Under the pieces are notes generated by a model, which was not told the origin of the DNA, did no database searches, and saw nothing but the letters and a program-made list of their open reading frames with translations. Made by a program: the position numbers and the translations under genes. A stretch of 64,000 nt of DNA, from the NCBI RefSeq assembly GCF_000143415.4, contig NW_003314280.1, positions 558,001 to 622,000 on the forward strand, given 5' to 3'. Positions 5,658 to 9,559 of the stretch are shown here, piece after piece. Each line of letters starts with the position of its first letter. The stretch's first letter is position 1. Origin of the DNA: Selaginella moellendorffii. Lineage: Eukaryota > Plantae > Lycopodiophyta.

Positions 5658-6672
5658 CTAGTGAAACTCGCAATCGTCACTGAGATCTCGATGCCAAATT
5701 TTAGCTGCAAACTCGTCCACGTCAGGGACGCATGTGTTTCCTTTGTAAACACCGGGTGGATCCTCCCACTTAATTAGCGGGTCTGGATCCTCAACCAGAA
5801 ATGCCATCATCTGCCTTCCCCGAATGACGGTGCCCTCCACTATTCCAATCACCATCAGGATGTCCTCGTCGTTGGGCGGATAGAACCTCCAAGTCACCGC
5901 CGGCGCGATGTTCCTAGGAAAGGCCAGGTCTCTAAACAAGAAAGAAAAAGAGGAAAGAAAAGATACCGAACGTCCGTAACCTTGCAGAACTTGTTGCCAG
6001 TTTTGTCCTCCTGAAACAGTGAACGAAAAACTAAAAACCTTCCTGATTTCCAAACTCTCACGCCATACCTGTGGCTCTCCAACTTGAAGATCCGAATCGC
6101 CTGGAGGCGGGAGGTGTCGGGTAACGGTAGCTCGAAACAGCCTCCTCACACCGTCCTTGACCTGCGCATGGTTCACCACACTCTGATCGCGATGCCAGAT
6201 GCGAGCTACAAACGCATCCACGTCGGGGATGCATGTCTCCGAAAATCGAACTTTGGGACGAAGAAGCGGCTCGGGATCATCGATCAGGTAAGCGACCCTG
6301 ACCATTCCCGGAATCTCGCAATCCATTATTCCCAGCACGAGCAGCACCCCGTCCGCGTTGGGTGGATAGAACCTCCAGATGACCCGTATCATACGAATCT
6401 TCCTGCTTACACACAATTCTCTTTTTATTAAAGCGAGAGAGATAGACAGAGAGAGTCAAACAAACCTGGTGTCGGTAACAAGGCAGAATTTGTTCCCACG
6501 TTTATCAGCCTGATCATAGAAAACCAGTCAATCTGAGATGAGGAAAAGGCAAAAATCAGGAGACCTGTAGCTGCCCAACTTGTAGATCCGAGTCGTTTGG
6601 AAGAGGGTGAAAAGAGGTGTCTTGCGCTCGCGCAAATAACCTCCTCACTGCGTCCTTCGCCTGCACCTCCAT
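5658..6672 (-). CDS. Orphan protein (about 267 aa) made of two tandem homologous domains; exons 6672-6565, 6509-6466, 6402-6069, 6010-5967, 5931-5658
   Basis: All introns GT-AG and frame-preserving; each half has KDxVRRLF...DSDLQVG, GNKFCxVTD (44-nt exon), WRFYPPN, DPxPL and TCxPDVDxFxAxIWHRD. Confidence 0.8.
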
Positions 6673-7553
6673 GGCCCTATTGCCGAATTGCCCTAACGTT
6701 ATAGCTTCAGGGAAAACTTCCGCTTTGCTGGCGTACTGTGAGCCGTTGGATAGAGAAAGTTTTCTAGTCCCTTTGACGACTAATTGTTTCCTTTGATTGC
6801 TTTTAGCTTTTCGTGCTGGGTGATCAGTAATAAAAAGAGACAAGAAATTTCGTTTAACACAGCTATCGAAAATACTTTAGTGGCCTGATGGTCTTATTTG
6901 AGCTGATCAGCACAGGTGGACTCAGCGGGTCCACGGAGATCAATGTTGCAAACAAGCACTTCCGGTGGAGCCAAAAGCCATGGATGATCCAGGGAGCCTG
7001 TTAAAGAGGCTGAGGCTGCTGAGCTTACACGGCGGAAAGATGCTGGTGCTCAACTTACGGCCGCTCTACATGGAAAATTGGAGTTAAACCATTGTCCACC
7101 GAAAAGTTTATGGGCTTTCCGCCTTCCTATGACATAAAGCAATGAGAGTCCAAAGGCATTTTAGTAGCTACTACGCACCACAACACAAGCTTCCAGCTGA
7201 GAAATAAGATCATGTTAACATTCCAACTTGCTGAGCTTCCCACCAATCCACGGCAGCTGATGGAATCTTATCAACGGCAAACACTGACATCGGCATAAGA
7301 TCTGATCGTGATTGGTTCATTATCTCCTCTCGAGCAGCCAAGGAAGCGGTCCTGCAGAAGACTTTACGTAAGAATTGAAGCTTTAGCACCTGTTTCGACA
7401 CGATCGAAGGCCCTAAGGAAGACTCCTAGCTTGAGAGACGAACTGATTGGCACTAGAGCAAAATTTTCGGGCAGTGCCAAGCGAGAGCAAGTCCTGAAGC
7501 ATGTTATCCACAAACGTCCGTTATATGTTGTACTACCTTGATTCTTTCCCACT

Positions 7554-9021
7554 TTAGCAAACAGTCATCTTAACCAGCATGGAGTCTGTCACAGCATACA
7601 CTTCATCGTACACCGAGCTAAAAACACCATCGTGTAGCTCACCTGTGGATCCTATGACAGAGCAGAAAAGGATATCTCCGCCACAAGTCCGTGGAGCTTT
7701 CTTGCAAGCCTCCAGAACACCAAGCAGAGCAACGCTGACACATCCGACATCACTGTCAAGCCGTCCCTTGTTCTCCTCGACGAATTCGTACCAATATTTG
7801 CTGCCACAACCGATAGAGAGCAGAGGCCCTTCCTGTATTGCTCCTGTGTGATGGATCACGAACGCTCCAATGGTTCCGTCGAGCTTCCTTGCGGTGACTA
7901 TTGCTGCTACCTCAAAACTGCCTCCCTTCCTTTCCACGTGCGTCTCTTGCAACAGCTCCACCATCACAGCTTGAGCTCCCCTGCTCATGCTCCCATAAGG
8001 ATCTGCTTTGTCGAAATGCTCACTCTCCACTACTTCATGCAGCCTTGGAAACAATCTCTGACCCCACTTCCACTTTCCAGCGATCCCCACAAACACCTTG
8101 TGCTCCTCCGATACAAGCCTAAACTTAACTGCTCGTTTAACTGATTTTGCCGGGTCAGGGAACGATGCTAGTGACTCGCTGCAGAGGACAAGCCCCTTCG
8201 GCATGACGATGGCCGCTATACAAGACCCCAAGGCGAATTGGCGAGCACTGATAGCGTCGAAAATCATGCTGCATAGTAGGCAGAGAATCTGCAGAAAGAC
8301 ACTCTCTTAAGAGGAAAAGAAACGAGAGGATCCTCACCTCAAAACTTATAACGATCAGAGCAATCCACTTGCATAACTTGGCATTTTGCTCCACAAACTT
8401 TCTGATGTTGTCGATTTCACCCATGGGATCATTTGGCAAGTCCTGGATATAAACGAGCCATAAGAACAAGGGAAAAGGCTGGACAAGATAGTTACCTGTT
8501 CCCATGACTTGTCAAAGAAAATGAAGGCCACAAGAGACGATTGAAGCAAGAGTAAACTTACAAAGACTATAGACGACTGGTAAAAAGTCCAAGTAACGAT
8601 AGTTGACTTAAAGATATTAGAAACGAAATGGGACTTACGCAGCACAGGCAGCGGCCTCTCAGAGCTTGGGCCCCAACGCATCCAATTAAGCACAGGCAAA
8701 TTCCCACTCCCATGAAAACATACTCAAACCTATAGAAAAAAACACCACACGATTAAAATCATAAAACAAGCAATAAAAATTATATACCATGGAACGGGGA
8801 GAGAGAACTCCAGCGCTATCACTCGAAGCAGATCAGATCGAGAAATCGGACTGCATCCATCGTTGTCCCCGTGCTTCAGGAGCTGATCGATCATCCACAT
8901 TGTATAGAGGATTGCACCTACACGAACAACAGCAGTCGATAAAGCATCCACATTGGATCATACCTAGCCCGATGAGGAACAGGAGCTTGACGACGATCTG
9001 GAGGTATCCCCGGCATTTCAT
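7554..9021 (-). CDS. Chimeric TOM2A/TET18-19-like four-TM protein fused to a proteasome-beta-like (Ntn) domain, about 399 aa; exons 9021-8964, 8917-8788, 8729-8639, 8576-8496, 8442-8338, 8288-7554
   Basis: MKCRGYLQ...LPVPWFEYVFMGVG...GRCLCC...AFIFFDKSWEQDLPNDPMG...KWIAL matches the TOM2A family; last exon ILCLLCSMIF runs into G-SCIAAIV..GLVLCSES..K..GIAG..IGCGSKY..TCGGDI; telo-box AAACCCTAA at 9047-9055. Confidence 0.82.
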
Positions 9022-9559
9022 CTTGCGCGGAGCTCTGGATTGCCCTAAACCCTAATCTTGGATTTTCATTTTCATGTTTTTCCCGCCATTTCCTTGCAAG
9101 CGTCTAGGGTTTATGGAGAAGGAAGAAAAGTAAATAGTCACTTTTTTCTAAATCATTTGAAAGCTTCTTTGTAACAAAAATTTTACTGAGGACCTTTTTC
9201 CTTCTGCATAGATGGAAACTAAAGAACTCACCATTAAAATGTTATCACTCAATGTCCAAACATTTATGCTTTTAAAAAGTCTTGTTTACTACTCTAGAAC
9301 TCATGAAGCTAGTGGATTGATGAGAAACATAAAATCTTTTAGACAATTATGAATTGAACTTTTATTTGTTGCTTAGATAGAGATTAATATTATATATAAA
9401 CATAACAAGTCATCCTCAAGATTTCTTCAAAGAAATGTTTGATATTTAGGTATAATTAAGGCATTTTTTAGCCTTAACCACCGTTTCACACCCTCAAACA
9501 TACACTCACATGCCCGCAATTCCATGCTTATAATTCCAAGCTTAAGCATAAGAGAAAAA

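Follow-up and report, generated by a model that had tools for sequence, protein, structure and literature searches.

Does one plant gene encode, in a single chain, both a TOM2A-family membrane protein and a proteasome-like domain? The question arises from a locus of the lycophyte Selaginella moellendorffii that lies on the minus strand between positions 9021 and 7554 of the window, the stretch of 64,000 nucleotides (nt) analyzed here (NCBI RefSeq assembly GCF_000143415.4, contig NW_003314280.1, positions 558,001 to 622,000 of the forward strand). Taken as a whole, the evidence is probably best explained by a real, transcribed gene for a chimera of 399 amino acids (aa), in which a TOM2A core is followed by a proteasome-like domain. 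The original prediction, made from the DNA letters, had proposed six exons joined at GT-AG introns into one 399-aa frame. Recomputing the coordinates and the frame shows this model to be correct: six exons run from 9021 to 7554, each is bounded by GT..AG, and the joined frame of 1200 nt comprises 399 codons and a stop.

Several features of the gene model bear on how its parts are joined. None of the five introns, with lengths of 46, 58, 62, 53 and 49 nt, is divisible by three. The exon 6 frame stays open through all 244 codons, while the two other frames contain 12 and 13 stops. The GC content at third codon positions (GC3) is alike in both halves of the gene, at 0.58 and 0.54. Retention of intron 5 is predicted to give a 215-aa product that ends at 8155. 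The only other in-frame acceptor of this intron, at 8303, lies 15 nt upstream of the main AG; its use would add the five residues SVFLQ in helix 4 and keep the fusion.

As read from its sequence, the segment of residues 1-169 is a divergent but complete four-helix TOM2A core. BLASTP aligns aa 1-169 of the spliced protein with aa 1-189 of TOM2A from Arabidopsis and poplar, starting at the first methionine and reaching through helix 4; the identity is 32-34%, and the E values are 6e-22 to 7e-26. These alignments score 83-94 bits, compared with 23.9 bits for the best of 200 query shuffles. A Kyte-Doolittle scan predicts four helices at about aa 7-28, 64-84, 94-115 and 145-167, the last of which straddles the junction of exons 5 and 6 (VISFE|ILCLLCSMIF). 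The TOM2A (TOBAMOVIRUS MULTIPLICATION 2A) family consists of four-pass membrane proteins (PMC10576174, PMC8157909), and the motifs CRG, GCVG, CL-C, AFIFFDKSW and W-x-AL of that family are all retained. TOM2A carries the Pfam Tetraspanin family PF00335 (PMC10807211), and so do the aligned homologues in the Pfam search (E about 1e-17). When the exons of the TOM2A part were submitted to Pfam one by one, the pieces were too short and matched no family. A fragment search for TOM2A with the exon 4 open reading frame (ORF) likewise gave no match, and searches of the protein-cluster atlas with exons 5 and 3 gave no usable one. BLASTP, helices, motifs and intron positions all agree with the earlier description of the N-terminal part as TOM2A/tetraspanin-like.

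The homologues used for these comparisons were gathered by running a degenerate DNA pattern for AFIFFD(K/N)SW over metagenome contigs, followed by local BLASTP. The pattern matched 25 plant loci, several of which are intron-free transcripts with a 280-aa ORF. Cluster look-up identified one of the matched ORFs as exactly Arabidopsis TOM2A (TOM2A_ARATH) and placed another in the cluster of poplar TOM2A. All 25 motif-matching JGI metagenome contigs (L002-L026) are plant DNA or plant transcripts, which represent host material in plant-associated samples.

Gene structure links the locus to TOM2A as well. In poplar-type and other plant genomic loci, the TOM2A exons span about aa 1-82, 81-115, 112-140, 140-176, 171-245 and 245-280. 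Allowing for a 20-residue shift, introns 2-5 of the Selaginella gene correspond to TOM2A introns 1-4 (about aa 82, 113, 140 and 175), and four of its five introns thus lie where TOM2A genes have introns. The helix 4 intron is of particular interest. In loci L005, L008, L009 and L022, it reads ...Glu(GAG)|GTAAGC ... TTGCAG|GCT (Ala-Leu-...), and L011, in which only the donor side is seen, has the same donor. The Selaginella intron reads ...Glu(GAG)|GTGAGG ... TCTGCAG|ATT (Ile-Leu-...), with the codon position and phase of the plant TOM2A loci. Since exon 6 opens with 14 codons that align with TOM2A helix 4, acceptor 8288 is the ancestral TOM2A acceptor, and from it the frame runs without a stop into the added domain.

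The position of the join can be narrowed further. Similarity to TOM2A extends to aa 169, and the added domain begins with a serine at aa 177, which places the breakpoint inside the seven-residue linker ARQFALG. According to these alignments, the exon downstream of the conserved TOM2A helix 4 intron contains the join, seven residues past the helix. The earlier observation that helix 4 (ILCLLCSMIF) leads straight into an intronless domain agrees with both the hydropathy profile and the open frame of exon 6.

Judged by homology, residues 177-399 are a very divergent proteasome-subunit-like domain. Exon 6 matches the Pfam Proteasome family PF00227 with 31.1 bits (E 2.3e-7), above the curated cut-off of 22.4; the match joins exon residues 20-174 to profile positions 3-153 of 189, and the domain alone scores 28.1 bits. 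Independently of the Pfam match, neighbours drawn from a protein language model point the same way, with 37 of the 40 nearest Atlas clusters assigned to PF00227 and a top score of 0.95. The predicted proteasome-like domain at the C-terminus is thus recovered by two separate methods. With significant homology in both halves and four intron positions shared with TOM2A, the fusion lies far beyond chance.

Other searches define how far this homology reaches. A word-index search with exon 6 gave no match, a sequence search of the PDB returned chance matches only (PUF60, eS17), and NCBIfam and PADLOC gave none. The sole match in a phmmer search, an Armadillo-repeat protein aligned through its repeats, was discarded as spurious. 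The label HslV-like, after the bacterial and organellar two-ring protease HslV, was rejected as a subfamily name because HslV profiles built from 15 proteins and from 80 species were not significant. Their hhalign probabilities were 0.7% and 1.9%, respectively, and hmmsearch returned -0.2 bits without a real alignment. A structural model guided by an HslV alignment reached a predicted local distance difference test score (pLDDT) of 55.7, with 60-89 in the core. It drew at least 500 Foldseek matches, all of them proteasome-family chains at a template-modelling score of about 0.55, a result biased by the input alignment. The order of elements in this model, which is subject to the same bias and speaks to consistency only, is beta-beta-beta-beta, alpha-alpha, beta-beta-beta-beta, alpha-alpha, beta-beta, as expected for the proteasome-like family, whose fold is an alpha-beta-beta-alpha sandwich with helices H1-H4.

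The residues at the start of the domain stand in the place of a processing site. In the proteasome-like family, the catalytic centre comprises Thr1/Ser1, Asp17 and Lys33, plus Gly47, and Ser1 is an accepted nucleophile (PMC8665760). Gly176 and Ser177 sit in the profile columns of the Gly-1|Thr1 self-processing site. The nucleophile of Escherichia coli HslV, Thr at residue 2 of the annotated K-12 record, falls at Pfam column 5, and Ser177 occupies that column as well, both with a query that begins upstream and with one that begins at the serine itself. This agrees with the G|S site named in the original prediction. Pairwise and MAFFT alignments start at Ser177/Thr1 and pair Glu193 (Ser1 + 16) with HslV Asp17 without a gap, although this alignment is weak (z 2.4, with 7 of 300 shuffles scoring as high). 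A V-G-I-A-G motif occupies domain positions 46-50, where the alignments differ in register around Gly47, the residue of the oxyanion hole.

The added domain stands in the place of the normal TOM2A tail, as had been predicted. Aligned TOM2A proteins continue into a tail of roughly 90 aa that ends in RCTIM or RCTIL, and this protein ends in KMTVC instead. The RCTIM/RCTIL end is a CaaX farnesylation signal. The tail is absent here, having been replaced in the exon after the conserved TOM2A intron, and the window contains no TOM2A tail remnant downstream. Nor does the window hold a second copy of either gene half, and no terminal inverted repeats, long terminal repeats or target-site duplications were found around the gene or its last exon.

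Set against known systems, the protein shows a mixture of agreement and departure in each half. It resembles TOM2A in an alignment that starts at Met1 and reaches through helix 4, the four helices, the motifs and the four common intron positions. It differs from TOM2A in its identity of 32-34%, a loop 1 with about 20 aa fewer, an additional intron at aa 19, and the exchange of the roughly 90-aa tail for a 223-aa proteasome-like domain. With proteasome beta subunits (PF00227; MEROPS T1), the domain shares the Pfam match, Gly-Ser at Gly-1|Thr1, an acidic residue 17, a G-x-G-S motif and the element order of the guided model. Unlike them, it has Ser for Thr, a Cys in G-S-G and no relative detected from a single sequence, and its "propeptide" would be a 176-aa four-pass membrane protein. 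HslV is similar in core size, and its weak pairwise alignment with the domain begins exactly at Thr1/Ser177; HslV profiles and NCBIfam, however, fail to detect this domain.

The original prediction held that no such fusion was known, and none between TOM2A and a proteasome-like domain was found in the literature or databases searched. In a survey of proteasome homologues (PMC8665760), the words plant, transmembrane and fused do not occur. Both halves come from known families, and their combination would be a new domain architecture. Proteasome-family proteins are known as soluble, self-assembling particles, and a copy seven residues past a membrane helix, with its processing-site residues kept, is unexpected. 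In addition, a TOM2A variant without the Cys-motif tail could help dissect the role of that tail.

RNA data show that the gene is expressed. Contigs from four small sequencing runs of one organism (X1, X2, X3 and X5) were aligned to positions 7200-9400 (2201 letters), and all of them are identical to the window sequence. X1 contigs skip exactly 8918-8963 (intron 1) and 8443-8495 (intron 4), so that X1 contains spliced RNA of this gene. The gene is transcribed, and introns 1 and 4 are spliced out. Exon 6 is represented by contigs at 7506-8275 (X5), 7618-7890 and 8132-8266 (X2), 7627-7875 (X1) and 7942-8192 (X3). Because the X5 contig is continuous, there is no additional intron between 7506 and 8275. 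Based on the gene structure, a fused mRNA very probably exists.

Several results nevertheless count against the chimera, and they concern its homology, its active site and its RNA. The domain is extremely divergent: a full HMMER phmmer pass over 1.84 billion (1.84e9) representative proteins found no relative of it, and the HslV profile fails to detect it. A single-sequence AlphaFold model of the domain is poor, with a pLDDT of 41. At the active site, the Lys33 equivalent is ambiguous, as different alignments select K27, K30 or K34 of the domain, and the conserved G-S-G motif has Cys in place of its Ser. In the RNA, no contig from the four runs passes over intron 5 (8289-8337); one X1 contig ends at 8340 and the X5 contig at 8275. 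At the 8338/8288 junction, for which the original prediction had proposed an RNA check, the joined mRNA is thus deduced from the gene structure. Finally, coverage of exon 6 is deeper and more frequent than that of exons 1-5, which 3' bias or a separate shorter transcript could explain.

A shorter transcript of this kind would imply two products. An internal promoter or start, with the ATG at 8267 (Met163), would give an independent proteasome-like protein of 237 aa whose propeptide has 14 residues, and the TOM2A exons would belong to a separate or decaying transcript. The X5 contig of 770 nt stops at 8275, a point that lies 8 nt upstream of the in-frame ATG at 8265-8267; contigs from X2, X3 and X5 cover exon 6 only, coverage in X1 peaks there, and the interval 7554-8267 is listed as a stand-alone ORF. 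Met163, however, aligns with a conserved Met of TOM2A helix 4 (LALMVRA), and for this reason it is regarded as inherited from TOM2A rather than as the native start of the domain. Acceptor 8288 is ancestral, and no stop separates the two halves. Moreover, the ends of low-depth Logan contigs are arbitrary, and 3' bias could account for the coverage. A stand-alone protein is very unlikely on balance, and the single fused chain is retained as the preferred reading.

Both ends of the protein would face the cytosol, as suggested by the even number of helices and by basic residues at the N-terminal end and in the loop between the second and third helices. TOM2A is a binding partner of TOM1. It multimerizes and is located in the tonoplast (PMC8157909), and by analogy with TOM2A the chimera may reside in an endomembrane. 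The added domain would then lie on the cytosolic face of that endomembrane.

Among the possible mechanisms, putative self-cleavage at G176|S177 from a membrane-anchored precursor appears the most likely, although it is proposed tentatively and with less than even confidence. In this scheme, the TOM2A core of the newly made, membrane-anchored chain would act as a giant propeptide, and the domain would cut itself loose at G176|S177. Two products would result, namely a TOM2A core without its tail and a soluble domain whose N-terminal Ser would serve as nucleophile. Self-cleavage is favoured because three active-site positions are kept in an otherwise unrecognizably diverged sequence, and because a stretch of just seven residues lies between the helix and residue 1, a position buried in the proteasome fold. 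Inteins, Hedgehog Hint domains and ubiquitin-ribosomal protein fusions offer a working analogy only, in that a module is translated together with its host protein and then separated from it. Their folds and chemistry are unrelated to those considered here, where cleavage is hypothetical.

The ambiguities at the active site also suit a fusion that is made and never cleaved, a reading that is unlikely but deserves serious attention. The domain would then be a catalytically dead module, like proteasome alpha or inactive beta subunits, and would provide a cytosolic surface for oligomerization or docking that is tethered to the TOM2A core. Ser in place of Thr1, Cys in place of the G-S-G serine, the lack of a clear Lys33 register and the very low similarity to active family members are all consistent with this possibility, as are the multimerization of TOM2A (PMC8157909) and the rings formed by proteasome-like subunits (PMC8665760). 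Yet Gly -1, Ser +1 and the acidic residue 17 are retained despite divergence past phmmer detection, which would be unexpected in a long-dead site. The seven residues between the helix and residue 1, itself buried in the fold, would also leave little room for an uncleaved domain to fold or assemble.

The divergence of both halves could instead reflect a young, selectively neutral chimera, which seems improbable. In this case, a duplicated proteasome-like cassette would have inserted into the exon for the tail of a TOM2A paralogue that is redundant and evolves fast, and the fused domain would be transcribed without a selected function. The TOM2A core is just 32-34% identical to angiosperm TOM2A and lacks 20 residues of loop 1, and word-index and phmmer searches found no relative of the domain outside this genome. 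Against neutrality, all 399 codons are open, every splice site is canonical and expression is seen in several runs. The hallmarks CRG, GCVG, AFIFFDKSW and W-x-AL are retained together with the residues at the catalytic positions.

Self-cleavage would also permit a more speculative reading, which is given little credence. In this lineage, the proteasome-like domain might have spread as a cassette able to release itself, attached to the 3' ends of host genes unrelated to one another and tolerated by cutting itself off at Gly|Ser/Thr after translation. If true, it would be an intein-like hitchhiker at the protein level: a single eukaryotic mRNA would yield two proteins, and a proteasome-family fold would take such a role for the first time.

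The weakest reading, and an extremely improbable one, is the decoy-effector immune module that the original prediction had offered as an option. Such an integrated decoy would use the TOM2A part as bait for a virus replicase and the protease part to signal or execute defence. Its sole support is that tobamoviruses use TOM2A as a host factor (PMC10576174). The locus shows no link to a virus, the protein has neither a nucleotide-binding leucine-rich repeat (NLR) domain nor any other immune or immune-receptor domain, and the PADLOC search was empty, which leaves that proposal unsupported.

Intron 1, the one intron without a TOM2A counterpart, may have a recognizable source. Exon 1 of poplar-type TOM2A genes spans aa 1-82 without an intron. 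In the Selaginella gene, intron 1 aligns with the first approximately 50 nt of exon 2 (8860-8966, minus strand), and both copies start with TAG|GT. The alignment scores 42.5, compared with 23.5 +/- 3.4 for shuffled sequences, and none of 500 shuffles scored as high. Read through, the intron encodes GMIQCGCFI, which is similar to GMIGYGIYL of TOM2A. It looks like an intron gained through a small tandem duplication, and the alignment suggests that it is a decayed copy of the start of exon 2.

Table 1. Features of the TOM2A-proteasome-like gene, in window coordinates (TM, transmembrane helix)
Feature	Position	Strand	Remarks
Exon 1	8964..9021	-	Begins with the start codon at 9021; covers aa 1-19 and one further base; first half of TM1; TOM2A alignment from Met1; junction to exon 2 spliced in an X1 contig
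Intron 1, 46 nt	8918..8963	-	Lineage-specific; none at this place in poplar-type TOM2A genes; skipped in RNA
Exon 2	8788..8917	-	Remainder of TM1, then loop 1, which has about 20 aa fewer than its angiosperm TOM2A counterpart
Intron 2, 58 nt	8730..8787	-	Same place as TOM2A intron 1 (TOM2A numbering, about aa 82)
Exon 3	8639..8729	-	TM2 and a short Cys-rich loop (GCVG..RCLCC)
Intron 3, 62 nt	8577..8638	-	Position of TOM2A intron 2 (about aa 113)
Exon 4	8496..8576	-	TM3 and family motif AFIFFDKSW
Intron 4, 53 nt	8443..8495	-	Position of TOM2A intron 3 (aa 140); skipped in an X1 RNA contig
Exon 5	8338..8442	-	Loop 2 and first half of TM4; last codon is the conserved Glu (GAG|GT)
Intron 5, 49 nt, GTGAGG...TTTCTGCAG	8289..8337	-	Junction that decides the fusion; position and phase of the conserved TOM2A intron after Glu175; no RNA contig over it
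Exon 6	7554..8288	-	End of helix 4, linker, proteasome-like domain and stop
Exon 6, first 14 codons, aa 156-169, ILCLLCSMIFDAIS	8247..8288	-	TOM2A-derived second half of TM4; aligns with TOM2A ALLFVLALMVRAAN
Linker ARQFALG, aa 170-176, ending in Gly176	8226..8246	-	TOM2A similarity stops at aa 169; Pfam match starts at Leu175
Proteasome-subunit-like domain (PF00227), aa 177-399, from Ser177	7557..8225	-	Intronless; Pfam match
Stop codon TAA	7554..7556	-	Protein C-terminus ...KMTVC
3' untranslated region, at least 48 nt	7506..7553	-	X5 contig spans 7506-8275

Two other parts of the window carry long reading frames. Downstream of the gene, at 5658-6843 on the minus strand, ORFs of 252 aa and 95 aa have a repeat in common (..K-D-x-V-R-R-L-F.. 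D-S-D-L-Q-V-G.., W-R-F-Y-P-P-N.. I-W-H-R-D) and give no Pfam match; they may form a multi-exon gene of an unnamed family. Between 11800 and 13000, long overlapping ORFs of low-complexity repeats with SPRW, GLGL and ESE motifs occur on both strands, and this interval is probably a simple-repeat tract rather than a set of genes.

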